From: Paragordius varius | Taxonomy: Eukaryota > Animalia > Nematomorpha | Length of the DNA: 64,000 bases | Direction of reading: 5' to 3' | NCBI GenBank assembly: GCA_964247055.1 | Contig: OZ176053.1 | Coordinates: forward strand, 6,386,001 to 6,450,000 | The notes under the pieces: generated by a model | The model's database searches: none | What the model saw: the letters and a program-made list of their open reading frames with translations, nothing else | Told to the model about the DNA's origin: nothing | Program-made: the position numbers and the translations under genes | In this document: positions 5,243 through 34,600 of the stretch, in pieces | Position numbering within the stretch: position 1 is the stretch's first letter | Layout of the letters: the number at the start of each line of letters is the position of its first letter

Positions 5243-5389
5243 GTTTAAGCGGATCATAGAAAAAATTGTTTTTGACAATGTATATTGTAAAATCCTCATC
5301 TCAAACTTTCTGCCGCCATTTTTCTATATATTTTAATGGCTAATGTAACAGGCAAATAGATGTATATTTGGAAAAATAATTATGTTTAA

Positions 5390-5962: not shown

Positions 5963-5966
5963 GTAA

Positions 5967-6586
5967 CACTTTGATTCAAATTGGGGTATCTAAATACCTC
6001 AGATTTGAGTTAGGATTTTTAAAAAACTACTGAAGGAAACGGTCCCAATTTATCACTTGGATTTAATTTGGGGTATCTAAATGCCCCAGACCAAATTAGA
6101 GTTAAAAAAAAAACTACTAAAGGAAACGGTCCTAATTTAAATTTATGCTTCTATCCTAATCAAAAGTATATGAATTTGCCAAAATATCTAAATAAAATTT
6201 TGTTTTGAAAAAACCATGTCAAGCTACTTGGACGCCATTTTTATTTTGAAAAATTTTTGCAAATTATCGTCTTCATTTAATTTTAAGGGTAAAATTAAAG
6301 CTAATTTTTAATATAAATTACATCTAACATTGAAAGAGATAAAAAAGCGGTTTATTCCGTAGTAATTTTTAATTTTACCATTCCACACATGTCACGTTCA
6401 CAAAATTTCTACCTCTCGGTTTTAGCTATGAATAAGTTATATCAAGTATTTTTAATAAGTGCACAATTTTGCCATAGTTTCGATTCCTTCCATATTTTTT
6501 AAAGAATTTAGTTTTAAACAGGCCTGGAGTATTTAACTACCCCAATTTTAATCGAAGGACAAAAATGAATGTGTTTTATCCAAGTG
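5967..6586. mobile_element. TTAA-flanked MITE, copy B (tandem with copy A)
   Basis: GTAA (5963-5966), then CACTTTGAT...ATCCAAGTG, then TTAA (6587-6590). It contains an extra partial duplication of the 5' block at about 6052-6135. Confidence 0.7.
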
Positions 6587-6845
6587 TTAAAGTGTAATTT
6601 TTAGTGCTGTATGTCAGAATATTTTTTGATTTTACCATTTAATATTTCTTTCATAAAATATTGTAATATTAGGTAAGCCAATAACTTTATTTTTTTCGTG
6701 GATGTGTATAGAGCGTAAACACTTTTGCTTGTGCTGTTTACTGTTGTAGTATGAGGTTTGTAAAACATATATTCATTTTAATTCAGCCGTTTTTTTAATA
6801 AAAATTCTTTAAACCGTCGAAGGAAATTTTAATAGTGGATCACAT

Positions 6846-9800: not shown

Positions 9801-12800
9801 AGTTTGAATATTCGTTTGATAAGCAACGCATGCTTTTATAAACAAATAACTACTTACACTCTTACTATTTGAATATTTACAAATATATGTTTATTTATAC
9901 ATACTAGTTATTTAACACCATTTTAGCGTATTACGCTGGTTTTTTCATCAAATTTGTTTACATAAGAGTTTTTTAATGTATAACTCAGATTTAAACATCA
10001 AATTATTTTATTAATCAAAACAGGAGAGACACTTTCATTAGATTGTATTGATCAAATTTGGTGTTAAAGTATATTTATTGATTTTTTATTAAGAACTAAG
10101 CGTTTATTAAAATTCACTATCATGAGATATGTTATTAATCTCTAGTATAAATGGTGATTTTTCCATTTTTGACCAAATCTTTTAATTCAATAAAATTTAC
10201 CCAGGTTTTGTGTTTCTTTTGAAGGATTTATATATATTATTTTAATATGACTAGAATCCTTCAACCAACATTTATCGCAAATAAATTAAGTTTTACAAGA
10301 GAATTTAAAAGTTTGACGTTACAATATCAAGCACTAAAAAATATAGCTAAGCAAACCAACACATCACTGGTTAAAAAGAGTATTCTACTTTAAGCAAGTT
10401 AAATAGTTGGCTAAAGGACTTAATTATTAAGTTGGTCCTATCATGTTGAAATTTGACCGAGTATCTAAACATAACAAATATTTAATTACAATGGACCCCC
10501 TATATTAACCCCAATTATGGGAAAAAATACATGATTTAGTATGCGCATCATGACCGTTTTTTGAGAAAAATATTTTTTTTCAAAATTAATTAATATTTAT
10601 TTTTTTCTTATTAAATATTAACCCATTTAAGTTGGGGTAAGGTTTATTTAACCTTAAACGATATTCAGACACTATACTTTATTTGAAAATTGCAATGGTG
10701 ACAGCTCATCAGCGTAAGCCAAAATTTAAAGGCGCTGTTTATTTCTAGAAGCTCATTCATTATAAGGGACTGGGGGGGGGTTACTCTATGTTATTTTGTA
10801 AGTCCATTTTATCATACAAAATTTCGGACATTCAGCGACCAATAGTTGTTGCGATTAACTCTTTTATCATTTTTTATATCACCGATGGCATATTAATCAA
10901 TGTATTATAATTTATATTTTAATCAATAATATTGCAAAATGTTCTTGCATTTTAGCCAAAAAATATTGCAAAGTTAGATTATGTTTCGTTCATCACATAA
11001 TAAAACACAATGGAATGGAATATATATTTTAATGATAAACATAATTATAGTTTTTGGACCGATATTCAATAATTTAGGTGCAACAATATTTACATAGACG
11101 TTAACCGAATTTTTAGTTAAGCTGGGAATCATTTTTAATACCTTTGAGCTATTATTAAATCATCAATAGCTTCTTAGTTTAAAAAAAGGCATTACATTGT
11201 TTGACATGAAGTGTTAAATTTGGTTACCTAAAAGACCTATATATCCAACGTGCATTGGTTAAGTTTTAACTTTATCTTGAAATAAATAATTAACATTCGA
11301 ATCGCAATGTGTTATTGATCATATACCGCAAATTTAAATATGTAATATAGAGAGAAATGTATCGTTCACCTACTTTTTAATGTTGCTGCTTACTTAAATT
11401 ACAGTTTGACTATAAAAATGTTAATTAGCTCTCGAAATGGTGTTGTAAGTTTAAAAACTTTTTGTATGAATGTCTCACTTCAATGCCTAATTTATCCTTG
11501 CACACGCTTAATGGGAGACATAAAAATGTTTAAACGGTTTCACTCACCACACTACGTACAAGATGTGGACATCAGACATTACTATTGATTTTATCGTACA
11601 ATTATTGTACATTTCACGTTACTTCGTTTGACAGTAAAATAGTCATTTTTTGCGTATAGAGCATAGCAAACTGTAAAAAGTTTAGCTTACCATCTATCTT
11701 TCTTACGTTTTATTGACATAGCAAGCATTACGTAAATATCTACCAATATTCGTCATATGATTGTATACACATTGATTTTTCTAAAGTTTCTTTAATAGTA
11801 ATGCAAAAACTTTTTATTGGTACAAAGAATGGATTTAAATTTAAATATCTTTTTTTCTTTTATACTATTACTATATGGATGGCCGCCTTTTTCAAATTAT
11901 ACCCTCACAGGGCTTTTAAATGTTGTTTATGATAATTATCATCTACTTTTCTTTTTTAATAAGATGGGGTTCATCGTACAACCGTTTTAGGTTTTCTTTA
12001 ATGTCCATTTTTGCTGAGTCAAACACAAAAATTTTTGTTAAATATATTATATATGGATATTTTTTGCATAAGGGTCATGATACGGATAATAAGCCATGTA
12101 TTTTCCCACAATCAGGGTTATGAGGAGGTTTATATATGATAAATAAAACTTGGAGAATCGATTTGATCTGCCTATTTGTGGTGCAAATCATATAATGCAA
12201 AGCAATTTATAATAGTTATTTTTTATTATATATTTACCTTTATTATATGATTGTTTTGCGATGCTTAGGTATCATGTTTTATGCGCGCGATCTAATTACA
12301 TCATTCAGAGTGATTATATGTATAAACATAAATTATGCGCCATATATAATAATTTGTTAGATATAATTAAGTAATTTTGCTTAGTTTCTCCCTAAAAATA
12401 AAAGTTTTGTAATTATTTACCCCTGAAAACTTTAAAAAATTCTTACACAAAGGCACTATTCGTTCACTTTCTTTATTTTATTAATTTAAAATGACTTTTA
12501 AAAATTTAGGTTTTTGAATCTATAGTTTTTATATAGAGGATTTTGAAACTCAAAAACTGTATAAAAACTTTAATTTAACTCCCTAATTAATTGATTAATA
12601 TTATTTAATATCTTTAATAATGAAATTTATAAAAAAGGGCTAAACTTTTGGGTATAAAAGGCGTTTAATTGTTTGAATAAATCTAATGCCATAACAAATA
12701 TGATTTTTCTTTTATAAATCAAACCCTTGCAAATCTTACTGTTTACTGTATTATTTTCCGAATCACATATATTTCAATATATAAAAATCGAAGTTTAAAG

Positions 12801-15800
12801 TTCAATTTTTAATTCTAAATAGCTAATCCTATTATAGAGATCGCATAAAAATGCTTACACAAATTAAATTTTTGTTTGATATCTTAAATTTTTATTCTTA
12901 GCCACAAAAAATGTTTAATTTAATTTAAAACTTTTTTATACTTAAATAAAATTTTCATGTCATATGCCTGTTTATAGAAAATTTTCATAAAAATATTAAA
13001 AGAGGTAATTTTAAAAAGTATTTTATTTTTTTCTGGATATATTTTTCTTTACTTCACAGGAATTAGCCATTTTATTTTACAAAGCATAGAGATATATGAA
13101 ATATTTATGCAAATTTTAATATACGTATTTCATTGTATATAGCACGTTTAATTTATGCAAATATGTGTCTCCTAAGAGTTTTTTTTTAATTCTTATAAAG
13201 TCCTTTCATATTTATCCTTTTTGCCAATGATTAAAACTAAGAATTAATATTATTAAGCATTTAATTTTATTGAAATTTCGCTAAAAATAACACAACGTTT
13301 GTACCTCAAAAAGAATTGATTTGTCATATAAAACTTGTTTTATAATATAATCATAATGTTTATATTAATGTAACTTTTTCGGTGATGCGAACACCGTTAA
13401 CCATTTATATGTAATTGTTTAGCGATCATCAATCATTTATTACAAAATTTAATATGTTTCACTGAAATTATTATTAGATTTCTTTTAAAAAAATGGATAA
13501 AACATTGATATCTTAATTTATATATATAGAATATAATTATAAATTTACGCTTGTATGACGGTTTTGCCAATTGAAATGTCTAAATTTGTGTTTTACAACA
13601 ATGTTAAAAGTAAAAAGGTAATTCACATTTTTTTGTAACAAGGTTAAAATAGCATAAAAGCATTAGCGTATAAATTATGGCCTAAATGGATGGTTAAATT
13701 TTTGATATCCATAATTTATAACATTTCCAATTAATTTTAAAGAAAATTTATTTATATCTAAAAAATATCTAGTGAGCGAAAATTTTTCGTTGTATAAAAT
13801 TTTAATTAGATGTTTCTAATATGGCTTGGCTATAAATTAATTAAATTTTTATGTTTTTCTGTCTAAATTTAAACGCATTGCTACGGTAGGTATTGTAAAT
13901 CATGTGGTTTAACGGACTAGACTAGTCATAAGCTAGAAAAATAAAAAGCTTTTATCTTGCATGTATATGATATAAAAAGAAGATATAAAGATTTATTTTT
14001 TTACATAAATATCCACAGTTCAGCAGTATCTTTTGGTTGTTTATAAAATATTTAGCCAGGTTTTAGAGTTCTCTCCCTTTAATTTATAATTTTGATTTGA
14101 AAAATCGGCTTTCGCACAGTAATTAAATGTTAAATACTGTACAACTTACAAAATGTTTTATACATTAAAATATAAATCTTCTCGGCACATCTTTACGTTA
14201 AAGATGTGTTTAATAAGTATGCATAAACCTAGACTATTTAGTCTATTAAAAGAAAGTGATGTACTTTGTACAATTTGCCGATTCCAGATTTTTGGAAATA
14301 AATATAACCAAATAAGTTTATATTTATCTTACCGTATTTGCGGCAAAATATCATTGAACTTTATAATAAAAACAATTAAGCTGTCTGTTATATAGTATGG
14401 CTGGTTTATGAAAGAATGTTCACCGCCGAAAATAATTTTAACATTTTTTATGTACTTTTTTTTGATTCATTGTCAGAAACCCTTACCACATTTAATAATA
14501 AAATTTTATTTAGTTTTTTTATGCAAAATATTATTTTTTATTATTAATTTTTTTAAACATTATGATTTAAAACGAAGGTTTTTTCCGCATAGCAATGTAA
14601 TTTATTTTATATGTGAAAGCATAAAAAAATTTAGTAAAATAAAAAGTTGTAATAACTTTTTAAACCTATTTAAAGTTAATTTACGGGTTTGACCATGTAT
14701 ATGTTTTTACCTTGAGGAAATTAACTATATATATATATATATATAAACGATTTCCTTTATTTCAATCGATAACAAAAAACTTGTGAATTTTATTAAACCG
14801 TAACTTAAAAATATATATAAAGGTTGATTTTATTACATAAAAGGCTAAATTTAAATATTTATGTTTCTTAGGTATATCAAACGGTTTAAGAAGCTCAACA
14901 TTAAAGTCCTCAAAAATTGGTGCAAACAAATTCTGAAGGGCCTTAATTTTTTACACACCAGAGATCCGCCCATCATTCATCGAGATTTGAAGTGCGATAA
15001 CATCTTTATTACTGGGAATACGGGGTCAGTTAAAATCGGAGATTTGGGCCTCGCAACGCTCAAAAAATCTTCATTTGCTAAAAGTGTAATCGGTAAGTTA
15101 GCTCTTAGATTATTTTCAAAAATTATATTTAATTATAAATTGAAAATGCCCCATCATGTAATGTTACATTATCGTATGTTATTTTGGAAAACGTTTTTAT
15201 TTTTAAGTATTGACCCTTTTTTGAGTTAATTAACTAAAATCATTAATTATCTGTGTGTGTGTTAAATGAACTCAATTCGAATAGGGTTCAATTTTTTGAA
15301 TAAATAATTAATTATTTGTGTTTGTCTTAAATATTTGTTTCAATAATATTTTTATTTAAAAAAATTTTTTAAAAATTAAATTGAACACATACATTGTTTT
15401 AAAACGAACGTACTCAGAAAAATCAATTAGCACAGATGCTTAAAAACGATAATGGTAAAGATAACCATTACACATTTTCTCTCGTTACATTACCATGGTT
15501 TTTTACATAATATTTATAATGTTAAATTTAATGCACCATAAAAAATTTAACATGATCTTCAGACTGATAGATAGATAGTATTGATAAATATGTATAATTA
15601 TATCATTGTTGTTTTGTTATACGGAAATATAATTATTATATTTATTACCAGCCATTTTTTAATTCGCAGAGTTAAACATAATATTTTTTATGGAAAAGGC
15701 TAATTTTATAATTTTTGAATGATTATTACATAATACATAAAAGAGTCATATTATTGGTTTTTAAAATTATCAATCTACAGTATAAGAAACCAATATTCAT

Positions 15801-18800
15801 ACTTATATATTATTTATCTTTTATATGCACCATATTAATATTTCATGACCTTTTTGTCCGCGATGACATATTGGGTTAGTTTTATATCCCCGAACTCAAT
15901 CTTGTAAATAAACTACTGTTTTGAAAGTTATTTTACTAAAAATTTAATTATCACACATTGTTATCATCCTGTATTTGATAAAAAAGCTTTTAGTTTTTAC
16001 AGGTTTGTAACTTCCAGACTCTAAAATCGGTACAGCTTCAAAACACACTTGAAATAAACAGCTGATTATAAAATTAATAAATATCAAGCTTTTGCTGGTC
16101 AAATGCAACCTGAAAGCTTTTTAAGGTTAATTATTTAACCATAATAAATTCATAGAAAAAATAGCGGCCAAAAAGGATGTAGATTTTTTTATTTTTTATG
16201 AAAATTCGTATAATCGGGCTAAAGAAAGCATATTTTAAATTCGGATTAATACCTGATATATAAATTGCTCTGGGATGGATATAAAATTACCCCAAAAAGG
16301 CATAAAGTGTTAAGGACCCTTTTACCCAAAATGGCTTTTTACTGTATATACTCAATTATTAAATCTTCATATAAATTTTATTTTTAATTTTTGGTGAGAA
16401 TCCGTTAGTTTTATATATGTTAACTTTTTAATTTTTATACCCTTCTGCACCTTAATCAATCTTAATATAGCAAAATAATTGCATAATGTGTAGGTCATTT
16501 CAGATAAATATATTTAGTGGTGAAATAATTTGGTGGAAAACAACAAATATCGATATTTTTTTGATAACACATTATAATCTATAAGTAAATGTAATTATTG
16601 CCTATGCAGTTAATGAATGTTTGTTATGGATTTTAGCATGTCTGTATATACAAACATATCCTTAATAGAATAGATATGCTACTATGGTAAATTCATACAG
16701 GTTAGGAAGATGTTTAATACAATTTATGAATAAAAAGTTAAACAATGTGTGTAAACAAAAAGGTAGACTTACTATTTTGCGTTTTTATTACATTTACCTA
16801 ATTTACAATTACAACATTTTATTACTCTAATGTTGAACTTTACACAAAATAATTCAATATATAGTACAAAAATAAAAATGCACATATATGATGGAAATAG
16901 AATAATTTATGCAATATATTTTTCGTTTAAGTTTGAAACAATTTAATAATAATATAAGTTTTTAGTAATAAGTCAACCATTTTATGTTAACTTATTTGGA
17001 CCTTATGAAAAAATAACTATTGTTTTGTAGGCACACCCGAATTCATGGCACCCGAGATGTACGAGGAACACTATGATGAAAGTGTTGATATTTACGCCTT
17101 TGGAATGTGCTTGCTAGAGATGGCTACCGGAGAATACCCATATTCTGAATGTCAAAATGCCGCGCAAATTTACAAACGAGTGACCACGGTATTAATCATT
17201 TTTTTCTTCATAATTTTATATTATATATATGATAAAGAGCCGTATAAGTTGTTTTAATGTAGTAATAAGAAAAATTGGAGATGTCACTTTTCTGTCTCTA
17301 GTTTCGATTTCACGTTATTTTTATAAAATGGATAAAATGTATCGTTTTAAGTACTCTTTTGTAAAAATGCAGATTCCATACATGTCAAATTGTTAAAATT
17401 GTTACTTTACCATAACTCAGCCACAAAATTTAAACATTAAACGCTAATTATATATATATATATATGCAATTTTTTAAATTTTATTGGACCGCTAGGAACT
17501 ACTGCTCTATTTTTCAAAGTTTTAGAACCGTTTTTAGAATTAATTTTATATCAAAAACGGTGTAATGGTTTTTGTTACCTTATAACGCTCAATCCCTGGT
17601 TATGTTTCTTTATTATAAATTATGATTTTTTAGCCAATAATGTTGCTTTTTTCAAAAGGGCGTGTCATTAATTAATTTTTCTTTTGTTTGATGATAGGGC
17701 GTTAAACCCGCTGCTTTGGACAAAGTCGAGTTAGCTCCGTTACGCGAAATCATTCAAGGTTGCATTGATGTTAAATGTGATAAACGATACACGGCCAAAA
17801 GTCTCCTCAATCATGAGTTATTTATGGAAGACTGTGGATTTAAGGTATTTAATTTATCATAAAACTCTATTATAATTATATTTATACCATTAACAGTTTA
17901 AATTCACCCTTGAACAATTTAAATCACGCTAAAATAAATTATTTGTTTTTTAAGATAAAAATTACCTTTTTTAGAATATTTTAAAATACAAACGTTTGCT
18001 AATAATGCTTAAAAAATAATAAACTATGTCGTAAAAATATATAATGAGTTATATTATCCCGAAAAAACATAATTTATTGTTAGGGTGAATTTGAATTAGG
18101 GGTGAATTCGAATTATAAATGGTATATATAGATAAAGCTATCATATAAATTTTTTTGTTAATCAATCTTCTGGTCAATTTTTTTTCCGTAAACTAAATGG
18201 GTGAAGGAAATATATAAGGTTATCATCCTACAAAATATCTGATAGTCTCGTTTAAAATTTAGGATGTAATTCCTATTTCTATGTTTTCCAATGGTTAGAT
18301 TGAATTGGTTTCAACGGAAGAAAAAACAACTGTTGATATGGTTAATCTTCAAGTTTTGGATGCTAGTAATAACAACATCACATCTTCCAACAACATCAAC
18401 CCTATGCCAATTAATCCGTCTAGCCCAAGTTTTAATAATGCGAATACTGTTACATCTCTGAATGCGATAACTGAAACCGCTCAGGTGATATTGGAAGGAA
18501 ATAGTGAACCAACCTCCTCTCAACATAACAATATTAACAACAATATTGTTGTAAATAGTATTACTGAAAATGGGTCCAACTTAAGCGACAATCGTGTCGT
18601 AAAATCTCTTTCCAACATGGAAAATCCAGCGCTGAATGGTGGCGTTATTGCTAATAACTCAATTACATCACTTCAAAAAGGTTTGGTACTTCAACTAAGG
18701 TTACATGTCGTAAATCCTACCAAACGAAAGGATAAATGTAAAAATAATGAAGCCATACAATTTGACTTTGATGTTCAACAAGATAATGCATTGGAAGTTG

Positions 18801-21800
18801 CACAAGAAATGGTAAATTTTATTATAAAATAATTAATATTATATGATGAAGTTTTGGTTTGGTTGTTTATAACTCTTGATGCGCAAATTTTTTTCCATGA
18901 AGGAATATATTTACCATATCTTTGCATTGTTTGGCAGTTAAACTACACTGCGCAAAGTTAATTTTATTCAATGTTATAAGAATAATGAGGGAGCTTTGTT
19001 TGAATACATTTTTATCTTTATATTAATTGTTTCAACTATGTATATATATAGGCCAGTTCTGGGTTCTTTCAAGAGGACATGGAGAATATTCGAAGTGTTG
19101 CTAAACTGATTCGGGAACGAGTTGCTTCAGTCGTAAAAGAAATTCAGCAACGCGATAAAGAGGAACATAATCAAACACAACAGTCTCAATTAACGGCAAT
19201 CGTTAATCAAACTCCCATAACTCAACCAGTTAAATCAAACGCTGTTTCTCAATCACAACCCCAATCTCAAATCTCTTTAGCATCACAACACAGTGATTTA
19301 GTGAATAATGAAGAAAGCAGTAGAAATGTGGCAAAAAGCGTTAATACCATCAATGATTTAGATCTTGCAGGAACTTCTCAAACCGTCGATGATGAAATGG
19401 AACCAAAAGGATCAACTTTAACCAGTAATAATGCAATTTCTAGGGATAATACCCATCAAACCACCCCATTATATATTACGACTTCAACTAGTGTTTTGAC
19501 AGCCCAAATCATACATAATGTCGGTACATCTCTTAATGTATCTACCCTCACCAATGAAAATAATACTTTCCCTTCAATTAATGGTAAAACTGGCAATGAA
19601 ACTACTATTGCATTATCCGAGACTTGTAATAAAGAAAAGTTTGATACTTCCACCCTCTCCACCCAAAATGTGTTATTAAATGCGGCACAAATCGTACAAG
19701 ATTTACTGTTATCTGATGAGGTGGTTTTTATTTGTTGATCGATACATTTTTTGTATTCACTACTCTTATAATCACTCATTCTTTTAATATGGCTCTTTTA
19801 AATATCATCTACAAGAAATTATCTTAAGTTGAATATCTTGCACTTTTTCTGCAAATTATTTTTTAGGATATATTGCTTAAAGTCACATATTTTTGCACGA
19901 ATTAACTAGTTTCTGAATATATACCATTTCCAGTTAAGTTCGTCCTAATTCAATGATTGAAAAGGGACGAACCTGAAATGCAAAACTATTTATTAAATAT
20001 TTATTAAATTGATGTAGATTAAATGGAAAGAAATATAATAAAACTATTAAACATAATTTAAATTATCAAAACGTTCATGCTGTGTGTAAACCATGTATTT
20101 ATCACTACTTTTGGTTTATTATAAAATGGATAAATATTTTAATTTTGATTCTATTTTATGCTCGTTTTATTTAGCAACATTCTACCGAAAACATTCCCAA
20201 TGTTCGTAAAAATTTAACTAATAACCCTCCACCAAATACTGTTCATGTTAATTCAGTGGCCAAAATTTATGAAACCTCAACTCTTGAGCAACTTGGTCGC
20301 GTTGATCATGTTAATTATATCGTACCTGTTCCTGTTATAGTCCCTTCTCACCTTTTCTCATCTATACCGACCGTATTGAATCCCATCATTGAGGGTATAT
20401 ATATACATCATTATAATACACAAAACATAACTTACTTATAATTTGGTTTCAAAAAAATTAATTTGAACCTTGATTTTTTTCCATATATTTTTTATCAATG
20501 TGATATATTGAGAATGTATTATCAATATCTCTATAAAAAATATGGTATTTTCTATAAAAAAATCTTTTACTTTTATTTTTATCATCCTCTATTATCATTA
20601 TTTTTCATCTCAACATATATTCTTTTAGAATCACCTGAAAGCCCAACACCTGATACTGTCCCTCACACGCCTAAAGAATCGGTACATTTATATCTTATAA
20701 TATGTAATGGAGTTTTTTATAAATATTTTTATTAAATTAAGTATCATTTATTCTATTATCATCATATAATTTATTTTTATGTAAAAGATAATCACTGAAG
20801 ATATTGTTAAAACTGAAACAAATCCTCCACCTCCTTATTCAGATTCTGAGTACACGGATTCAGCGGTTTCCTTTGACAGGTTTCAAATATAATTATCAAG
20901 TTTTAATAATAAAACATTGAGCACTATTTTATAATTAATTTAAATCAGTTTTTATTTTTTATAACGAGCGCTAAAAAACTGTTTTCAACTCATTCCACCT
21001 TGCCATTTGATCAATCTCTTTTATTTTTAATAAACTTTACGCTATTTTTTAATTGTTAGGCCCGTATTCTAGTTAGACATTTTTAGAATTCAATCTATTA
21101 TTATAAGGAATGTTTTTATTAATTAGTTAACTAATTTCTCTTCTTATAGTCAAAAATCATCCAATAAAGACATTGCCCTTGACAATCAAACTACCTTTAA
21201 TTCAACAAACATCCAGAATACCAATTTGAACACAGCGTATTTATTATTTTTCTTTTAATATATTTTACAATTACAATATGATTTCAGATTCAAAATAATT
21301 TTTGCCAAAAACCGTAACTATTATTAAATATTAGGGGTGTTTCTAGTCAAACGATAATTATTTTTAATAGCGTTCAATACCTTTTTTTATTTTGGAGGGA
21401 GAAAATTTATACAAACATCATTCAAAATTATTCAACTACTATGTACTAATCACTTATATGCTAAACTAAAGATAAATACCATATTACAACATTTTTTCCA
21501 TATATTATACAATATTTTAGCGTTGCACATTCACAAAGTGGTACTTCAACGCCTTCAATAATGCAATTACCGACTGGGATTTCAGCTTGTCTTTTACCAA
21601 AACTTGGTGTTCTAAATTATGACCGAGATAACGGTTTGATTGAATTGGTTTTAGAGTGTGTGAACGATATTACTGGCAAACAAATTACCACGACGTTTGA
21701 ATTTACACCTGATGCAACAGATCCACAAGATATTGCTTCGAATTTGGTAAAACGCTTAAAAATTTTATTTGGTCGTCACAATTAAGTATTAGTGAATTTT

Positions 21801-24800
21801 TATTTTGAAAAAATATGGTTTTTTTAAAAAAAATCTTATTGACTTTCCCGTGAAAATGTTTGTTTATAAATGATTTTTTACACTTAACCAAAATTTTAAA
21901 TCTCATATTTATATATATACATCAACCATTGTATTTTTCATTGATGTTTTTATTTTGATAATACGTTATATTAATAATTAAAATTCTATATTATTTGATT
22001 GGCGATCAGGTCGCTTTTGGTTTGAACAAAAATAATTTATGATAACTTTATATTTTTTACTAAAAACTGTTTTGGATTAAATCAGACACGTCAAAAAATT
22101 GGCTTATTAGTTAAAATATATAATATATGGCTGTTTACTTTGTGCATAATTTTAAAGTAAGAGTGCCAAATTAGACCAAATTTTATTATACATATACTCA
22201 CATATTTTTAGATTCAACAAAATCTTTTATCATCGCTACATTTTGACACGTTTATCAAAGATCTGATAAAATTGGTAGAGAAGGTTAAGATAAACGAACA
22301 AAACCAAATTTTTACAACATCGCAACCTCAAATTATGGATAAAAATTTGGAAAATTCTTCTACCACAGAATCAAGACCCTTATCGGTAATTGTAATTATA
22401 TTAGATTTACCTTGTATTTTCTTTATTTAATGATTCAAACCTTATTTTAAATATTTTGATAAAGTTTTCTAGCGGCTTTTAATTCATGATAAACAATGAA
22501 CATTTATTAATGTTATCTTTAATTATTAAATATTTTAAATTTATCCAATTTTATATTTTTTTTAACCAATAGCGACTCTCCAATAAGGCAATCGTAACAC
22601 CACCTATTCCCTCGTCCCCTCATCCCTATTCATTAAACGAGGAGAAATATACTCTTTCCGACACAAAAAATGAAATGGTTAAACAACCTATAAAACCTGC
22701 TGTAAATCATTCCAATGTGAAAGAAACTGAAAATAATGTTTCCATTGAACCACCCCCACCACTAAAGGTTAATTTAGAGTTCACGTATGAAAACAAACCA
22801 ACAGAAAAAACTAGTATTATTACGCCTCCCGATGCTATGATATCCAATCTTTCATCCAAAGATGGTACACATGCACAATCTCTCATCATTAAACAACAAA
22901 CGGACGACAATATCGCCTCAACTGATTATCATTTCAGTCACAGGAATAGTGCACCGGCTAATGATTCAAATGTTAATCCCGTTGTAATTAGTACGCTTGA
23001 AACCTCTAAAGAAGACAATACCAACAATAATGTACCAATCATTAATTTAACGTTGCAAAAGGACGTTTTGATGACCAAAGTAGCCGTCCAAAAGTTACAA
23101 GAAAAATTGGAGGAACTTCAAGCCCAAATTGATACTTCAACCCTTAATTTGAACAATCAAACAGCAGTAGCAAATGCCCCCAAGGGCTCGAGTATTACAC
23201 ATTCAAACGCACAATCAGTCCTAGGATCCCAGCATTCTATAAACTCTCATTATCAACCAGTTACTAAGGTGGTTGTTGTTATATTTTTAGTTAAATTTTT
23301 TGTTTTTCTTTCATTGTTTAATAAATATTTTTTATGTAGGAAACCGTTGCTAACACCCAAAACTTTGATCATGCCTTATTAGAAAGTGTACCCTCAACCA
23401 CTGTATCACTGACTAATAATCAACCTTCCACACTGACTGATAGTAACACTACTATGAATATGTCACAATCTACTCTGGCTTCTTACAGTTTAAAGGAATC
23501 GGTTATGTCCTCGATGCCGCCTTATGCATCTCACCGAAATTCATTTTCCGGTACTACGATTAACAAAGTATCATCCTCCCAAACGAATGATAACGCCATA
23601 GTTGCTAATCCCTTATCAGTGAATGATTTTGGGATAAAAAATTTGACCAATAACTATAATAGTTTTTACAGTTTACCAACAAACGGAACTAATATGCCGT
23701 ATCCCAATGATAATTCAATGTTCCCAAGGAGTGTTGAAAATCAATCATCCTACATGTCTCATGCCTATGGAGGAATGAATATGAACATTGCCCCGTACGG
23801 ACCACCCGGTTTTTATTCTATGGCCCCGGGTCCATTTGGTATGAGTGGTGGAGGAGGAGGGGGAGGTGTAAATCAAGTTGGTGGTCCACCCTTCTACTAT
23901 CCCCCTAATCAACAGTCACAGTGCGATAATCGTGGATCAATGTATCCATATTTAGGGGGACCATGTACGACCACAGGTATTGGAAATGCTATGGCGGGGT
24001 CTGTACCCACGCTTCCACTTTTACCCATGACACCATACTTTTGGGCCGGTCCTAGCATATACCCCCCTAATGGACCGGGTGGTCTTATGTTTCCAGCCGC
24101 TCCTGGTCCCCTGACTGCACAACAACCCTATTACAATGGCGGACCTTTTGGATGGCACCACCAGCAACACATGATGCCTCCTCAATACCAATCCCATCAT
24201 AACAATTTTTTTCCACCGGGTTATTTGCCAAACGGTCAATCCCCCTACTATTATCCATTTCAACATCCTCCACAATATGTACCAAATCCCTCGCTCCAAA
24301 CCTCTTCAGCCGGTATTCAAAATGAACGCTTAGACGAGGATGAATATACCGAAGTTATGGAGAATGTTTTAAATCGCAATGACTCTGTTACATCAAAACA
24401 TTTACAGGATGCACCTATTGTATCTTATTCGAGCGCATGTATTAAACCAAACATTCCACCAATAAGTAATAAAACTGCCATGGTATATCATGGGACGCGT
24501 TCCTTAATCCTCCCTAGCGCAAAGGAAACCACAAATAATAACATTCATAAGAAAATATCCGTACATGACAATAACAAAAATAGTCAAAATGGCAATCCCA
24601 ACGAACTAGGTTCTCCACGCAAACCAAAAGATGAAAATAATCCTGACTTAGAAATGCTCAATAATAATTTACACAAGGTGTTTAATATATCGGAACAAAC
24701 TAAACAACATGCTGATCGCTATAAGCCCAAGGTAGAAATTGATTTCAAAAAAGCATCCTTGCCAATATTAACTAAGTTTAACAAAAACCCATCAGAATTA

Positions 24801-27800
24801 ATGAGAGATGTCTTATATGATTCATGTAATATTGCCTTAAAGCGTTGTGATTCCCCTACAATACATGTATCATCAAATCAAATTTTATCAAACGAAGCAT
24901 CTATAGATACCAAAAATGTTAATATAACGATTTCTTGTCAAACATGTTCTGTTGTCTCTACTTTCATATCTCAAACAACGACACGAATGGGACGATTTTT
25001 AATTTGTAACAATACAAAAAACGATGATAGTATACAAAAACCAAATATTTTACAATCCATACCAACTACCCAACCTATCGCGTTAAGTTTGGATTTTCAA
25101 AATGTTCATTATGCGCAATCTAATGTTAATCAAGAAGATAAGCAAAACATTTATGATGCATACATGGAATCTGTTAATGAATTTGATAAAGAGAAGGTAT
25201 TTTTTAGGAGATATAAATGAAATGATCAAATAGCATTTTTGACTATTAAATTAATTTATTTTTAAAACGTATGTATGTTAGCAACATGCGATAAAAAAGG
25301 ATTTTCACCAAAAATGCAAATCTTGATATAAAATTTATTTTTTCTATGCAAATGCTTACGTGGAAGTTAATATTATTTAAGTTAATATAAAAACAAGTCT
25401 TAAAAATTAATTTTATAAATTTTACGATTGATTAGCTTTAAGACAATCTCGATAACTCATTTATTATCACACAAGTCACTTTTATATCTTTATAAGGATG
25501 TCATGCAATATTTTAATAATTTTTTATGATTAAACATTTATATATATGTGTGTGTTAAGGATGAATCTTCCCTATTTTCCATACACTCAAGTCCATTCTC
25601 AATTAGTAGAGGGAGTCGGAGTAGTTGTAGCAGTGAAACCCGGAGCCTAACCTCTCACAATAGCAGCGGCAAGGAAGATGGCGATTTTCATAAAAAAATA
25701 TTTAACATTGAGCGTAGTCCTCATTCACACAGATTTAATCATTCACATGAAAAGAATGATATGCATGCAAGTTGCAATAATCACAAGAATAATAAAAATA
25801 ATAACAAACTGGATGTGTTTTTTGCCCCCTTAGGAAACAACTATGAGTTTGACCTTCCAGACGTACGAACATTAGATGAGGATGATGATTTGAATATATT
25901 GGGAGGCTCGAATCAAGGTTCCTTCGATTATTATCTGCATGAACGGAAAACCTCTAGTGCCATCCCTCCTCAAAACCTAACAAAAACATTTTATAATGGC
26001 TCCCATCAACAATCCACTTCCAAAAAACACAGTACTACACCATCCTTTAAACATGTTGCAAATCGCATTCATCACCATAACTATTCGAAAAAGCGTTACA
26101 ATATTCATAAAAATAAAAATTATGCTTGTGTCACTCAATCTCAGAGCCAAAACGTATCCTCCATGTTTGAGAATCGGTATATGTATGCACCAATACAAAT
26201 TGAAAGCAAAATGCAATCTTTAGAGCATAATGGTCAAAATAACCAGCAGAAGGATGCGCAGTATGCAGTGTACTCGAAACCAACTTCCATTTCCAGTCAA
26301 TCTATAGATTTGGATAATCGCTTAAAACAGCAAAAATATATTGGAAACGCAACGGAAAAAAATAATTTGTTGCTACCACGCAATATGCATTATCGGAATA
26401 GCCCATTATGTTTTACCAATGGAAACGTACAACTAACAAACAACAATTTTAACGATATATTTCAATCATCATTCCTCGGCAATTCCGTTAATAATTCTCT
26501 ATCATTGGCATCAACTAGAAATATGAAATCTAGTGATAGAAGTTTAGTTAAATCATCTACAAGTGGTCCTAATAACATGACAAAAGTTACGCGACCATCT
26601 TTACCCTTTACCAGTTGTTTCCTAATGGTTAATCCATGCAAAAGCAGCACTGTACTAAGCGAAGATGAATTTCTTTCATCTGACGGTTTCTTGAAAGAAA
26701 TCTCGAATGTTAATACTGCTAACATCATTAAAACAAAAAGAGTTGGAGAGGAATGTATTAAAAACTACAAGACTCATATAAAAAGCCAAAATCATTACAC
26801 CATAAACAGTACCACTCTTTCGTCAAACACCCCATACAATACTATACATAATTCAATGGTTCACCATAATAATACGGGAGATAATTTTCAGCCAAAGACT
26901 GGTAGTGTACTTTTGGGCGTTCGATGGTGTAAAAGTGAAGAAAATTTGAAGAAATTAGCTCAACTCTATGACAAAACCGTTTCCAAATATAGTCGCTTGC
27001 AACCGATTGAAAGAGCCTTAGATACAATGTGTTCTATTGCTCAATGTGATTTACATAAAATCTCACCGGATGATCATGTTAATGGTTATGTGCCCAACGC
27101 TAATTTCATTATTTCCAATCATTTTGATCGGAGTTCCTCTCCCATTCACAACAATGTTAGGCCAAGTGAAACAGATAGTAAACCGTTTACGCTATGTTTA
27201 AAGGGCGATGATAATGATAATAAAAATATGGAAAGCACCACCAATCATCCACAGATTCCTTTTTCAAATCAAAACCATCATATAGCTGCAAATAATTACA
27301 TTCCTTCGTATGACGAAGATAGCGGTCAATATGGATTTGGTAGTCCGAATTCATACGACTTCAATAATAACAATAATGCAAACAACAGCAGTCCATCTCA
27401 AATGTGTCCAGTAGCTTATCAACGTTCAGCATTAATGGATGGGAACAATAATATAATTTCGACAAATATGTTTGGCCATCAACATGGACGATACAGGGCT
27501 TCGGATCATCAATCCCATTTCTGTAACTCTTGCCGCAATAAGGTATGGTGGTCAAAATCAACTATACATCAATTTTTTTGAATAAAATATCGAAATTTAT
27601 GCGTTAGCTAAATGCCGTTTAATATTTCAAAACAGTATTCTTTCAATTAGTTAAATATGATTTGTACAGTAAAAATTAATTTTAAGACAAAACGTAACAA
27701 CTTATGGATAAATATTTTTTTTTAAAAAGACAGCCATACTTTTATAATAATATTTATTAGCCGAAATGATAACAATGATTAAGAGTGTTATTTCATTTGT

Positions 27801-28186
27801 ATCAACCTTAAAACAAATTAAATAAAATAAATAAGGTTGAAAAAATAAGAGTCTTTAAAAAATATTTGTCTTAATTTTTATTGTATATGTGTCTTTAGTT
27901 AATAACAACGGAAGCTAACTCAAAAAGGCCCCTTTATCTTGAAGATTACGAAGATTATGATGAAAATTATCAAAAACTGTTATCAAGGTATGAATATTTA
28001 TATTGTAAATCTTTTGGTATTTTTCGTAAAAAATTGTTATATTTTCCACATAGACACAAAGCTGAACTTGCCATTATGCTTTACAAACAACAAACAGAAA
28101 TTGAACAGTATAAACACCTTAGATCGTATTATAAATTATTTGCTCCAACATCGCCTCCAAATAAGTTTGACACAAACGGATTCTAA
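6846..28186 (+). CDS. WNK: WNK (With-No-lysine K) serine/threonine kinase, 18 exons, about 2797 aa
   Basis: [11 protein letters not shown] (catalytic Lys in subdomain I), VAWCELQ (Cys replacing the subdomain II Lys), [18 protein letters not shown], activation loop [19 protein letters not shown]1 motif EAIQFDFD, a CCT2-like segment, GRFLI (RFx[VI]) and a C-terminal coiled coil [22 protein letters not shown]. Exons: 6846-7748, 9197-9369, 14872-15092, 17031-17188, 17698-17844, 18299-18811, 19052-19720, 20175-20394, 20629-20681, 20788-20879, 21150-21236, 21521-21746, 22212-22385, 22573-23268, 23340-25196, 25560-27542, 27899-27987, 28054-28186. All introns are GT-AG with consistent phases (8394 nt in total). 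Small exons in the low-complexity region are less certain. Confidence 0.95.
14726..14745. repeat. (TA)n microsatellite
   Basis: TA run in WNK intron 2. Similar runs occur at about 17450-17465 and 52698-52727. Confidence 0.85.
17885..18124. mobile_element. Small TA-flanked foldback element (TACCATT termini) in WNK intron 5
   Basis: TA|TACCATTAACAG...AATTCACCCT on the left mirrors AGGGTGAATT...AAATGGTA|TA on the right. Same family as 50705-50939 and 57885-58213. Confidence 0.75.
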
Positions 28187-29058
28187 CACGCAACTATAAA
28201 AATTGCGATACCCTTATTCAATATTTAATTATCATTTTATGAATTTCGATCAAATGTAAGCGCTTAAAACAGCATATAGTATTACTTTTATTTTCTCGAT
28301 ATATATTGGAATATTTTAGCTTATGTGCCATTTTTATTTCAATTATCTTTTTTAAAACAGACATCACATATTCCCAAAATTATTTAATGCACTTGTGATA
28401 ACCCTGTGTTTATTATGTTAGCAATTTATATATTTTAATTTTTCATTTTCTATTTCGCCGATGGTTTTGGTTTCACCAATCGAGCGCATTATATTTATAA
28501 AACAACACTGCCTTTAAACTAATTAAAAATGGGTGTCGGACAATTATTAAATCTTAAAAATTTTATCATTGGATCAATAATATTTATATCGTAAAATTGT
28601 AAACGCCCAAAAAGGTTTTATGCAGATATCCCATTAAAATTATATTGATTCAACATTTTTTACTCTAGATCAATATATGACTTTAATTTTTATCTCCCAA
28701 CGTATTATATGTCCACCCTATTTCGGTGTCATTTAAAATGCCTAGAATACAACATAATTGGCTTGCTACGATAGTAAAAATATATCAATATATCACAACT
28801 TTATTTGTCATATAATTAATTAAGTTACTTATTATTACACACATATAAAAAATAAATTGAGTTTTTTTATCCTTTTATTTGTAAAAAAGTAGTTAATCGA
28901 TAATACTGATATAAAAACATTAACAATAATTAATTTGGTAAAAATTTTGTAGATTTACATTACATTGAATATCAATATATTGCAATGGTAAAAAAATTAT
29001 ATAACGTTAGTAGTTGAATATATGATATTATGGGTTAAGAAAAAAAAATGTAAAAGTC

Positions 29059-31486
29059 TTATGAAGTTTTTTTGGTGTATCCAATCACATTATAAGCGTT
29101 AACATGCATATGCTTCCGATCGCGCCATAACCATTTGTTGAGAAAGCGTCCAAGTATTGCCAGAGAAACGTAGAAAGCAAATACGACTACCAAAAATAGC
29201 ATTATTTCAAACGAACTTAAAACGTAAAAAATGGGATAAACCCATATATCCCCGGCGTATCTAACCCAAAACAACCTGCATAAATAAATATATATTAATT
29301 TTTAGGTTTTTTTGTATTTTATAGATAAGTAACTTTTTAGATGACTATGTCATTTCGAATCTATAAGAGTTGCTGGTAAAACGTCTTGAAAAAAACAAAA
29401 TGCAAAAAATGTGCAAACAACTTTTTTAATGGAGCTTATGATCATTAGGCATGGCTAAATATGTACAATCTTTAACCAAAAAAACCATGTTATCAGTTAT
29501 AATAATTTTTGTTTTTATATTTTATATATTGTATTTGTTTAAAAATCAATATTTATGCTTATAAAACAGGCTTAAAATTCATTTTAAAAATTTGCCCATT
29601 TAAATTAAATAGTGACAAATATAATATAATTGAGCATTATTGGTAAAAAACAGACTACTAATCAAAAATATGGATAAACAATTCAAACAAAGCATTCAAA
29701 GTAGTCTAAATCAAATGCCCAAATTTTATTTCCGTAAAACTAAACTCCCAAAATATATCAAACGAACAGATAATAAATGAGAGGTCACCAAAAAATATAG
29801 GGCCATATAAATAAATATTATTTTCAACGTTTCATCCTACAGTGTGGAACATTAAAAGGAAAATACGCTAACTGGCAGAAAATTTTAATTACACAATAAT
29901 TATAAAACGATTATTAAAACCAATTATAATATATTACAGATTAGAATTTTGAATGATTATGATAAATAAAAACGAATTGTCTTTTGCTTATTATAATTAT
30001 GTTTTTATATAAACAAAATAATAACTAACCGTTAAGTTATAATCCAATATACATGTAGCGTCAATAAATAAATACATATGTCGAAAAATTGTGGTCTGTA
30101 AACTATTTTCGCCATATTAGATTTAATCATGACTCCAGGCATTTCATTTGGGCAAAGATTTTATATTATTTTAAAGGGAGAAACCGAATTAAAATAGGAT
30201 GAAAATATCAAATTATTTAACTTAAATTTGGTGAAGATCAAGGAAATTTGGGTAGGACAGATATATATTGGTAAAAAGATGTTTAATGAAATTAGTATTA
30301 GTATATAATTGTGCTGCGAGGCGCATGCTGGTCACGGCCGCAGAGTGTTTCACTAGTTAAACCTTAGATTAAATAAGAATATTTATTTGCGACCTAAAAT
30401 TATCTCTGGGGTTACAAATTATCATGTCAAAGGTGCAGCAGTTTAAGCACGCTAATCATTCTATTTAAAAGTGCCCCTCAATGTAAAAGTCAAAATGAAC
30501 CGAACATTTCTACGCCAATAGAAAAAACGGCATTATAATGTTTCATTATGAGCTTGCAAAGACAGAAAATTATCAAGGAGACTACTTAATGAAAAGACTC
30601 CACATGAGGAAAAAAGCTAAACTGATTGACTGTAAACCATAAAATTCCCATTTTTACAGGATGTGGGCTGAATATAGGGGCAAATTCAAAAAGGATACAA
30701 CTATGATTGGCGCATTAACACTGAAAAACAAGCTATTACCAAATTAGAGACCTACATGCTATCCAGAAAATTATTTTAAGGCTAACATATTAATTATACT
30801 TCAATAGTTATCTAACATAGTATATCAACATAAGGTCCCCGTTATTTAAAAATTAAAATAAAAAATCAACATATAATTCCAATTCATATAAATTTTAAAA
30901 AGATTTAAGACTTACCATGCATAATATACAGATATAAATCCAACCAAGTGGTTAAATGATTTTTTAAAAGATGAATAATGATGTCTTGTTAAATATGAAT
31001 CTATTAGTAAAAATGTCACCGGGCATGTGTGCTAAAAAATTAATTTATGTTTACTAGAATATTATTATGCCAGAAAGGAATGTATGCATCCATGTATTCG
31101 GGGTAAACAAGTTCTCTGTTTATAAAATATAGAATCCAAAAAAGTAATGATACAATCTATCAATATATGGTAATAATACAGTTCCCAACGGAAAACATAT
31201 TGTGTCATATAAATAATCTCGAACACCTATTAGTCTAAACTCTTTTTTCCAGTGAAAAAATGAAAATACATCACTAAGCATCGCAATAGTAAAATATATT
31301 AGTTGAAGATGCTAAATTATATAAAATCTTTACCAAACACCATATTGTTAAATATTTATAATCACCGGCATAAGTCCTTTTTGAGGGCACATCTATCACA
31401 AAGATATGAAAATAAAGATCACATAAGTAAAGGATGAAAACAGTAGAATGAAAAATAAATTGTAAAAAGCTGAGGCTCGAAAACAT
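29059..31486 (-). CDS. AIG1: AIG1/ADTRP-family multipass FAHFA hydrolase, 5 exons, 239 aa
   Basis: The spliced product has KYLTIWCL-HLQLIYFTIAMLSD, RDYLYDTICFPLGT-IVSLLFWILYFINRELVYP, WHNNIL-HTCP and IWVYP. These align without gaps to AIG1 motifs as I recall them (KFLTFIDLVIQAVFF, RDWMLAVLAFPVGVFVVAVFW, WLNHGMHT, MWVYP). The catalytic Thr and His are retained. Exons (-): 31334-31486, 31180-31311, 31055-31156, 30916-31031, 29059-29275 (720 nt). Confidence 0.9.
31032..31054 (-). other. Ultra-short 23-nt GT-AG intron (AIG1 intron 3)
   Basis: GTAAACATAAATTAATTTTTTAG. Removal puts the catalytic His codon (31029-31031) in frame. Confidence 0.85.
31157..31179 (-). other. Ultra-short 23-nt GT-AG intron (AIG1 intron 2)
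   Basis: GTATTATTACCATATATTGATAG. Removal joins FPLGT to IVSLLFW without a gap. Confidence 0.85.
31312..31333 (-). other. Ultra-short 22-nt GT-AG intron (AIG1 intron 1)
   Basis: GTAAAGATTTTATATAATTTAG. Removal restores the frame; retention gives a stop at 31274-31276. Confidence 0.85.
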
Positions 31487-31604
31487 AGGGGTTTACATAT
31501 ATTAAAAACAGATGTTTTACCAATAATCGCATAACGACATTTATTTTGAGATGCATTTAAGAAATTTTTCTCCGTTTCGTGAGATCATAATGGAGCTTTA
31601 AATA
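31487..31604. promoter_or_regulatory. Putative bidirectional promoter / shared 5' region
   Basis: Only 118 bp separate the divergent ATGs at 31486 (-) and 31605 (+). No specific core motif was identified. Confidence 0.5.
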
Positions 31605-34600
31605 ATGGATTATATGTTGCCGGCAGAAAAATCATCTAGTCGAACAGAAAAATGGATTGAAAATCATTTTTTAAACGGAGAGCATATATTTGATATAACA
31701 TCTGAATTTAATATACTTAAAGTCCAAAACATGAAATCCGACAAAAGAAAAAGATGTTCAAAAGATCCAAATGACAATTCCGAATCATTAACATTACGCC
31801 AGGTAGTTCAGACTGAAACAAGCATCGGTATCAATCGCCCGCCTTTGAATTCTATATCTTACTCTCATGTCATAGATGTTCATAAGAATAACTTACTGAT
31901 TAGCGGGTCAATCTCTAATTCATTATTATCTTTACCCAAAAATAATAATGCGATACAGATGAACCTATCTAAAGATGAACCAATAATAAATAATATATCA
32001 CCCGTATATCCATCCTTACCAAATGATTTCATTAATGAAAATTATTCAGACATTTGGAGAAAGCAGCAAGAGGCTAATCAATTGCAACAAATGCAAATGC
32101 AATGGCTGATGTTTGCATCAGCTATGATGGGGCAGATGCCCGCCAATAATCAAACTGGGTCACAAACACCCTTTTTACCGCATCCGTTAGCAGCAGCGCT
32201 TATGATGCAATATCAATTAGGTCAAATGCCTATCTTACCGTTCGGAGTGCAAATGCAAAACTTTAACCCTTATCATATGTTTGCTAATCAAGATTTATTA
32301 AATAAAAGTAAACAAGCGTGCAATCTTACTTGGTGTACTGTTAACAAGGCTCAACCTTCCATAATATCCAGTGCTCTGCCAGCTTCTATAGCACCAATGC
32401 CTATCCCATCAACTTCCATTGCCAGACGTATTACAATTGATCAAAACAACCAAATGAATACGAGTGCTCCCACTCCAAAATCGATTGCATTTTTAGCTAA
32501 TCCTGATGAAGGCGATTCTGTTGTTAGGGGATATTCGAGAACATCTAATTATTCTTTAGCTAATAATAATGAAACTTTGGCACAAAAAATAAATAATACA
32601 AATGATCAATCTTTTCTTTTTCGTAAAAAGAGTTGCGATAGTCACTGTGAGAATCAACAACAATCATCATACAGGTATTGGGATCCTGCCAAAAAGTGTT
32701 GCACTATCAACAATAATTATTTCGATTACAAAGATGGACAAAAGCAAACTATTGAATCAAATCAAAATGAAAAATTTGATGGTTTGATTCATGATAAAAC
32801 GTGCGCTAATCATTTGAGCAAATTATTATCGTCTGCTATTTCATCATCTCAAATTCATACACCTGCATCTATAGATGGTAACCAATATAACCATCATAAT
32901 GATAAAGTAACGGAATTATAATTTTTGATTCATTTATATATTTGATTATTTTTCATCTCAAAATTAAAAGTGTTTATTTTAAGATACGATTGAATCAAAT
33001 TCGGTCAAATATGGTTAAAAATATTATTTTAAATATTGTGGTATCTCAGCATATTTGAAACATCGCAGAATTATTTTTTACGTTTTTAGTTTTAAATCAA
33101 TACAATGAAAGACTCAAATTGCTTAAAATCGTTTTAGCTCTGTTTGATATTGCGGCTGACCTAACTTTTATAATCGACCTTTCTCGGAATTACCAACATT
33201 ATATCATATTTCTAACTTCAATGTCTGGTTTTCAAATCTTTTTTTAAATAAATAACTTAAGCTTTGAAAAGACCCTTGTTGGTTTTGTTTAAATAAATAT
33301 ATTTTTATAAACCCAATATATAAATGACCAACGTTATTGTTGTTAAATGATGAATAAATTCGAAATCAAATCCTGAGATTCAACCAGATCCGCAAAAAGT
33401 ATAAGTGGTTGGATAAATTTGAAAGAACTAAGCGGCTACAGTTTATAACTGCTTTAGAACCGTTTTGATTTTTTAGTTACTGGTTTAGCACTGAAAATAT
33501 TAAAAACCAGAATCAAAACCGGTTGCGATATTTTTATATGCTTTATAACCAGTATCGTAAGATTATCGATTGCTATCGGCTATCGATATACGGAATTTTG
33601 GACGGTAAAACGTAGCCTGTTTTAAATAACATATAAAAAATATTATGGCAATCAATTATAACATATGGCAATAATATTTGACATTTATAAACGAACGCCC
33701 TATCCCAACAAAAAAATGATTTATATAGTTTGAAAAAATTTAACGTCATCGACGATACAAATTTACCCTTCAACATTTTGAACTCGCTTTTTAATATTTT
33801 TAAACACAATAATTTATGCGTTTGTCGGCATAGCTTACTTTAGACCATTTTAACGGTTATAAAAATCGATGTATACTTTTAAATGCGAACAATAAAATCG
33901 AAAAATCTCGATGACAAGTACTAAAATGCTTACTAAAATAATATGTTATAGCTAATATCCCCTTACATATTCTAATTTATATATATATAAAAAAATATAT
34001 TTATTTAAATTTGCTTTTTTTGTTTTATTGACCATAACGAAATCATACTTTAATTTTAGACTTTATAACAAATTATAACTAATAATATGGCTCTTAACTA
34101 TGTATATTTTATAGTTTTACTATCTTAAGCTAAAAAAATTATTTGCGATTTTTATAAATGGATGTTAAAAACACAATTGATTTCTATCAAAGATATAACA
34201 TTCTCAATAAAACAAACATTTTACTGATGCTACTACAATCGAATCATTTTATGTAATTTTTATTTTGTTTTATATATATTATGTAGAAAAACATATTTTT
34301 TATGTAACTCTTGTAAACGATATAAGCAGTACTATAGTGTATAGTGGTTGTTGGTTAGTTTAATGATGATAAAAAAATAAAATGGATTTTTTTTTCGTTG
34401 ATATATAGAGTAGCCAGTCTGCCAGTCTTCATTTTATGTAATATGTACATTCAAGTGATTGTACATAGTAGTGACTTTTGTATTCATTTTATGCAATGTA
34501 TAAACTTAACACACATACACATATTGTATAAAAAAATTTTATACTGTAATGTACAAATCAAGTCTGACAATATTACATAATTATGGATGCAGCAGTATGA

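Follow-up and report, generated by a model that had tools for sequence, protein, structure and literature searches.

The minus strand of a 64,000-nucleotide (nt) stretch of DNA from the hairworm Paragordius varius (Nematomorpha; NCBI GenBank assembly GCA_964247055.1, contig OZ176053.1, positions 6,386,001 to 6,450,000 of the forward strand; hereafter the window, whose own numbering is used throughout) carries an AIG1-like gene that appears to be interrupted by three consecutive introns of only 22, 23 and 23 nt. With a probability of roughly 0.8, these segments represent genuine GT-AG (U2-type) spliceosomal introns that were already present in the protostome ancestor and shrank in the hairworm lineage to a minimum of about 22–23 nt, while the gene itself would encode a working Thr/His membrane hydrolase of the FAR-17a/AIG1 family. 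Judged from the sequence, all three tiny segments are very probably genuine introns.

The gene extends over positions 29059–31486, a locus for which the list of open reading frames (ORFs) in the window contains no long frame as long as it remains unspliced. According to the original prediction, excision of 22, 23 and 23 nt, together with a further 1640 nt, yields a protein of 239 amino acids, and both coordinates and lengths proved exact: five exons are joined into a coding sequence of 720 nt, i. e. 239 codons plus stop (Table 1). The three tiny introns lie next to each other toward the 5' end of the gene, so that the interval 31032–31333 is bounded by the final base of intron 3 and the initial base of intron 1, and they are followed by the 1640-nt intron 4. 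The co-occurrence of tiny and kilobase introns in a single gene, another element of the prediction, was hence borne out. All four introns begin with GT and end with AG. With 13–22% GC, the tiny introns are poorer in these bases than the coding sequence (32%), and keeping any single one of them truncates the reading frame by a stop at codon 71, 115 or 134. Less weight can be given to the earlier argument that all five tiny introns recognized in the window (three in this gene and two in an OCRL-like gene, see below) have lengths that are no multiple of three, as five out of five would arise by chance with a probability of 0.13 and introns of 3n length were invisible to the method applied.

The identity of the encoded protein is best seen from a Pfam scan that was conducted one exon at a time. 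Exons 2 to 5 match the FAR-17a/AIG1 profile PF04750 consecutively and together account for positions 44–206 of its 206 positions. Exons 3 (33.3 bits) and 5 (26.7 bits) individually exceed the cut-off of 24.5 bits, while exons 2 and 4 reach 19 and 18.7 bits, respectively. At the exon junctions, the profile continues from position 86 to 87, from 118 to 121 and from 157 to 160, and the alignment with orthologues is free of gaps at the junction columns, in agreement with the gap-free alignment across every junction that had been claimed from the sequence alone. Both Thr47 (within KYLT) and His130, which is followed by Thr, align with residues that are invariant among the orthologues. In human AIG1, the conserved Thr43 forms the catalytic pair together with a His that has Thr as its next residue and a second His three positions upstream (PMC8394805). 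Because the His-Thr pattern matches, the aligned His in exon 4 can be assigned as the catalytic one, and it is indeed encoded by the first codon after intron 3, as had been noted before. The predicted protein thus resembles human AIG1 and ADTRP, which hydrolyze fatty acid esters of hydroxy fatty acids (FAHFAs), in its PF04750 match across exons, the KYLT Thr and the His-Thr pair, a length of about 240 residues and a hydrophobic, multi-pass character. It differs from the family in that just 30–35% identity is shared with members from outside the hairworms, and in that the His located three residues before the catalytic His of vertebrate AIG1 is replaced by Asn both here and in the hairworm Gordionus (WHNNILHT).

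When the 71 amino acids of exon 5 were searched against 1.84 billion representative proteins, the closest homologue was a protein of Gordionus sp. m RMFG-2023, here referred to as P0001 (CAK9295359.1, identical to XP_065316065.1; "androgen-induced gene 1 protein-like"), which is the same product from two annotations of the Montseny horsehair worm genome. The complete AIG1 model is 48.7% identical to this protein, as compared to 30–35% for its counterparts from Capitella, Priapulus and Nucella, and the unusual motifs WHNNILHT and YLTIWCL are common to both hairworm sequences. The genomic neighborhood is shared as well. A tblastx comparison of window positions 18689–28141 (plus strand) with positions 36110–29342 (minus strand) of the Gordionus locus L004 gave collinear matches in a region annotated with a WNK-type kinase gene, and this WNK-like gene is convergent (tail-to-tail) with AIG1 in both genomes. 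Orthology of the two AIG1-like genes is therefore supported by the elevated sequence identity in combination with the collinear WNK-like neighbor. In base composition, the window (about 28% GC) resembles the Gordionus genome, for which a preprint reports 26.9% GC and 64% repeats. Orthology, synteny and composition together point to a nematomorph that is akin to Gordionus, yet clearly different from it.

The orthologue provides the strongest argument for the intron nature of the tiny segments. Exact spliced alignment of P0001 gave introns of 67, 38, 45, 17561 and 44 nt for Gordionus, and that of the Capitella teleta protein (P0015 on L002) introns of 527, 60, 47, 289 and 1455 nt. The first four introns of all three animals, including the window, fall onto the same alignment columns (60, 109, 143 and 181) with the same phases (0, 0, 0 and 2). 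Hence, each intron can be followed individually through the series window/Gordionus/Capitella, with 22/67/527 nt for the first, 23/38/60 nt for the second, 23/45/47 nt for the third and 1640/17561/289 nt for the fourth. Intron 4 of Gordionus (L001, positions 3663–21223) measures 17.5 kb, compared to 1.6 kb in the window and 289 nt in Capitella, and the AIG1-like gene of Priapulus caudatus (L003, positions 501–1181) is intronless. At the positions of introns 2 and 3, all three animals have short introns: those of Capitella measure 60 and 47 nt, those of Gordionus 38 and 45 nt and those of the window 23 and 23 nt. Each of them appears to represent the minimal intron size of the respective lineage. 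As three arbitrary lesions could not strike ancestral intron sites, carry GT and AG at their ends and restore the reading frame upon removal, the tiny segments are best regarded as ancestral introns that were shortened.

The pattern recurs in a second gene of the window that is unrelated to AIG1 and encodes an OCRL-like inositol 5-phosphatase. Removal of two 22-nt segments from this gene (Table 1) restores two catalytic motifs, one of them being ALGFQELD. Among the five tiny introns, GT is followed by A in three and by T in two cases with nothing conserved further downstream. The 3' end reads TAG in four of them and AAG in the fifth, and a sequence logo would require more than these five cases. 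All are AT-rich, with A residues located about 7–9 nt before the AG (as judged by eye from the five sequences). Their 5' ends (GTAAAG, GTATTA, GTAAAC, GTTTTA and GTTAAT) are weaker than the consensus GTAAGT of the long AIG1 intron. When the window was scanned blindly and statistically for GT..AG stretches that join open frames, no length peak emerged, since chance frames in long ORFs swamped the signal and 64 kb is too little sequence for this purpose. Dominance of short introns in this genome is unlikely, because AIG1 itself contains the 1640-nt intron and the WNK-like gene one of 240 nt.

Sequencing runs (X1 to X5) were used to verify the genomic sequence. In four runs from two samples (X1–X4), 80–93% of sampled 31-letter words from positions 30916–31486 were present. 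A contig of 825 nt from X4 covers positions 30597–31420 and spans all three tiny introns, while a 290-nt contig from X5 covers positions 31133–31420 with introns 1 and 2 and shows zero differences from the window. Both contigs derive from short reads and contain no joint at any tiny intron. The covering runs behave as DNA, because the word depth of X4 is flat across exons, introns and intergenic spacer. Long-read assemblies of AT-rich genomes are a matter of general concern, and longer introns could in principle have been collapsed or insertion/deletion errors introduced into the consensus, yet nothing specific of this kind was found. In view of the contigs and the word counts from independent runs, a collapse of longer introns during assembly is excluded, and the probability of any assembly artefact is negligible.

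The same reads also inform about selection. Nine substitutions distinguish the 825-nt X4 contig from the window, and among those listed, eight are located in 319 nt of the long intron, as opposed to at most one in the 505 nt of exons and tiny introns (Fisher p ≤0.003). Among the differences from X4 listed for exon 5, four are synonymous and reside inside the domain, and one is a His-to-Asn replacement in the unconserved tail; for exon 1, one Ser-to-Arg replacement at codon 6 is listed, which likewise lies in a non-conserved tail. Hence, 4/6 of the listed coding differences are synonymous. This substitution pattern fits an AIG1 gene under purifying selection. A divergence of about 1–2% from the window is seen for X4 (organism A, high depth), while X5 (labelled organism B, low depth) matches it perfectly over several contigs in the region 27600–33500; species labels and actual relatedness may disagree. 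X4 furthermore carries a 6-nt insertion just beyond the AIG1 stop codon.

Table 1. Exons and introns of the AIG1-like gene and the two further tiny introns of the window.
Feature	Position	Strand	Characteristics
AIG1-like exon 1	31334–31486	−	codons 1–51; ATG at 31486; Thr47 in KYLT; aligned with Gordionus P0001 up to ..LTIWCL
Tiny intron 1	31312–31333	−	22 nt; phase 0; GTAAAG..TTTAG; 14% GC; unchanged in X5 contig, spanned by X4 contig
AIG1-like exon 2	31180–31311	−	44 codons; PF04750 profile positions 44–86
Tiny intron 2	31157–31179	−	23 nt; phase 0; GTATTA..GATAG; 22% GC; within X4 and X5 contigs
AIG1-like exon 3	31055–31156	−	34 codons; PF04750 profile positions 87–118 (33.3 bits, E 4.3e-8)
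Tiny intron 3	31032–31054	−	23 nt; phase 0; GTAAAC..TTTAG; 13% GC; in-frame TAA; within 825-nt X4 contig
AIG1-like exon 4	30916–31031	−	starts with conserved His130-Thr; PF04750 profile positions 121–157
Intron 4, ordinary	29276–30915	−	1640 nt; phase 2; GTAAGT..TGCAG
AIG1-like exon 5 and stop codon	29059–29275	−	PF04750 profile positions 160–206; 45% identity to residues 173–225 of Gordionus P0001
Intron of OCRL-like inositol 5-phosphatase	54522–54543	−	22 nt; GTTTTA..AAAG; removal restores protein motif
Intron of OCRL-like inositol 5-phosphatase	54386–54407	−	22 nt; GTTAAT..TTTAG; removal gives ..ADIVALGFQELDL..

Several observations weigh against the assignment as spliced ancestral introns. 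The probable RNA runs X10 and X12, which bear the same species label, gave no contig on positions 27600–33500 and a word share of 0.00, so that the stretch is covered by DNA-like runs alone. Moreover, no protein of this AIG1 gene from this genome was retrieved, neither with exon 5 from the 1.84 billion representatives nor with the full-length Gordionus protein as query, within a collection of 15 billion proteins. Since the protein is absent from the searched collection, no public annotation backs the AIG1 junctions. The model is less secure toward its C-terminus, as the fifth, phase-1 intron of Gordionus (44 nt) and Capitella (1455 nt) lacks a counterpart at positions 29059–29130 on the minus strand: the homologous site does not contain a GT, the intron was omitted from the model, and the ORF continues as a longer, unconserved tail. 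Finally, branch point and mode of recognition can be proposed only from five sequences and by analogy. The removal of 68 nt from the RNA is accordingly a prediction from the genomic sequence. The missing RNA and protein records would speak for retention of the segments, be it in a pseudogene or in transcripts that are degraded owing to their premature stops. Such retention is nevertheless very improbable, given that the interruptions carry GT and AG ends and occur at the exact positions and phases of ancestral introns and nowhere else, that every exon is open and both catalytic residues, Thr and His, have been preserved, that substitutions between samples avoid the exons with mostly synonymous coding differences among those listed, and that the same pattern is repeated in the OCRL-like gene.

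If the tiny segments are shortened ancestral introns, a plausible scenario can be drawn. The AIG1 introns would have been inherited from the protostome ancestor and become shortened in this hairworm lineage, in which the lower limit of intron length may have fallen to about 21–23 nt. A deletion bias could then push unconstrained introns down to this limit, while others stay long or become lengthened. A longer intron is seen in the WNK-like gene, whose intron at positions 18812–19051 on the plus strand (GTAAAT..TATAG, between ..EVAQEM and ASSGFFQED..) measures 240 nt, compared to a distance of only about 70 nt between the Gordionus tblastx blocks that match its flanks. Some introns are thus longer here than in Gordionus, and not every short Gordionus intron has become tiny. 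A normal spliceosome may recognize the tiny introns across the intron itself (intron definition), probably guided by a minimal 5' signal of GT with a following A or T and by an adenosine about 7–9 nt upstream of the T-rich ..TAG 3' end as a putative branch point, a real polypyrimidine tract being absent. The 1640-nt intron, with its textbook ends GTAAGT and TGCAG, would be subject to conventional splicing. As any tiny AIG1 intron that is left in the transcript leads to an in-frame premature stop, nonsense-mediated decay may clear the mis-spliced RNA.

The original prediction went further and proposed that a distinct tiny-intron splicing mode operates alongside conventional splicing, for which no support was obtained. 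According to this explanation, altered or additional spliceosome components would define a mechanistically separate pathway and hence two truly separate intron classes. Some features can be read in this manner, including the very tight grouping of lengths (22, 23, 23, 22 and 22 nt), the weaker 5' ends of the tiny introns relative to GTAAGT of the long one, and a distance of about 10–14 nt between 5' splice site and branch site that is difficult to reconcile with simultaneous binding of U1 and U2. In addition, the authors who described flatworm microintrons suspected a separate functional role for these (PMC6530080). The window is, however, silent on the machinery, as neither small nuclear RNA (snRNA) nor transfer RNA genes were found in it, and equally short introns of myxozoans and Stentor are accompanied by canonical U2 snRNA and U2AF (PMC13644364). 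Moreover, Gordionus and Capitella have short introns at the corresponding AIG1 positions as well, and a downshifted peak of minimal length is the simpler explanation for the data. A separate pathway thus seems improbable. An even bolder proposal would be that this lineage has a hard floor of intron length at about 21–22 nt, beyond the reach of a textbook spliceosome with U1 and U2 bound together, and that a modified early-complex pathway serves the 5'-clustered tiny introns, while exon-defined kilobase introns are spliced in the same nucleus and from the same transcripts. As a side effect, part of the reported "rampant loss of universal genes" in Nematomorpha would then be an annotation artefact of predictors that reject tiny introns. 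This combined proposal is rather unlikely, too, and the shortening of ordinary ancestral introns remains the preferred explanation.

A number of observations concern the surroundings of the AIG1-like gene. In the convergent WNK-like gene, a CCT-like domain is readable at positions 18299–18829, while the long C-terminal ORFs at positions 22675–27581 contain no Pfam domain. Just past the 3' end of the WNK-like ORF, the word depth of X4 rises to about 6200 (positions 27600–27796) versus 300–800 elsewhere, with many loose ends at positions 27665–27747, which suggests a high-copy repeat. A smaller increase to about 1160 occurs at positions 29373–29938 inside the 1640-nt intron. In or near this intron, X4 shows joints from 27732 to 29572, from 29589 to 33285 and from 29938 to 29506, as well as a 62-nt skip at positions 29593–29656. 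These features suggest a dispersed repeat or a structural polymorphism inside the intron. The 1640-nt intron itself has no second copy in the window and no convincing terminal inverted repeats. On the other side of AIG1, at a distance of 118 nt from its start codon and in divergent orientation, a Gln/Asn-rich ORF of 438 codons is located on the plus strand (positions 31605–32921). Neither a Pfam domain was found in it nor a tblastx match to the 10 kb of Gordionus sequence that lie upstream of AIG1.

Introns of comparable size have precedents. In a survey of 51 animal genomes, only dicyemids and myxobolid myxozoans are named as animals with introns below 30 nt, a feature that was linked to genome reduction (Hadjez et al. 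2026, PMC13644364). Nematomorpha are without mention in this study, a full-text literature search for Nematomorpha or hairworms in connection with introns retrieved no report, and the word intron does not occur in the preprint on the Gordionus genome. The list of known cases that accompanied the original prediction (ciliates, chlorarachniophyte nucleomorphs and dicyemids) was incomplete in that it lacked the myxobolid myxozoans (PMC13644364) and the 5'-clustered microintrons of flatworms (PMC6530080). If the assignment holds true, hairworms would constitute the third animal group, and the third independent origin, of introns below 30 nt. They would also provide the first case of such introns occurring together with kilobase introns in the same transcripts of an AT-rich genome. 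Provided that the repeat richness of Gordionus extends to this species, genome compaction would then no longer be a viable explanation. The same three ancestral introns form a natural series, with 527/60/47 nt in the annelid, 67/38/45 nt in Gordionus and 22/23/23 nt here, which makes the minimal length of animal introns accessible to experimental testing. On the practical side, the default minimum intron lengths of aligners and gene predictors would break such genes. For this reason, and because no public protein of this AIG1 gene exists in the searched collection, low BUSCO scores and inferred gene losses of hairworms would need re-examination.

Outside the animals, tiny introns are found in Paramecium (about 25 nt), Stentor (15–16 nt) and the Bigelowiella nucleomorph (18–21 nt). 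In ciliates and nucleomorphs, intron retention leads to a premature stop, and the decay of unspliced RNA can be used for quality control. The introns described here share with them a similar length range, a hard lower limit and the premature stop upon retention. In contrast, ciliates and nucleomorphs, which are not animals, possess essentially only tiny introns.

Closer parallels exist in Dicyema japonicum and the myxobolids (PMC13644364), parasites like the hairworms, that possess GT-AG introns of about 20–27 nt at conserved ancestral positions. In those animals, the 5' signal is reduced to GT plus A, a polypyrimidine tract is weak or missing, and a few A residues before the AG probably serve as branch site. 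The five introns of the window, three of which start with GTA and two with GTT, may present the same picture, although five cases are too few for proof. In these animals, the short introns represent the bulk of all introns (median 22–27 nt) in small and compact genomes (PMC13644364). In contrast, the tiny introns of the hairworm, a member of the Ecdysozoa, share a transcript with a 1640-nt intron that reaches 17.5 kb in the sister hairworm, and they reside in a genome that is presumably rich in repeats, judging from Gordionus.

With respect to gene architecture, the flatworms offer the best comparison. In animals, it is normal for intron lengths to form two peaks, with a sharp one at the short end (PMC6530080). 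The microintrons of Opisthorchis, Schistosoma, Echinococcus and Macrostomum (Ershov et al. 2019, PMC6530080) likewise form a sharp short class beside a kilobase class. They are clustered with each other and prefer the 5' end of genes, as is the case in AIG1 and its Gordionus orthologue, lack a polypyrimidine tract and are easily missed by annotation software. They differ in that their lengths peak at 37 and 90 nt as opposed to 22–23 nt in AIG1, and in that their splice sites are closer to the consensus, whereas in AIG1 the long intron has a stronger 5' site than the tiny ones. Taken together, the hairworm introns represent a new lineage of a known phenomenon, with lengths that match those of dicyemids and myxobolids and a gene architecture that matches that of the flatworm microintrons.

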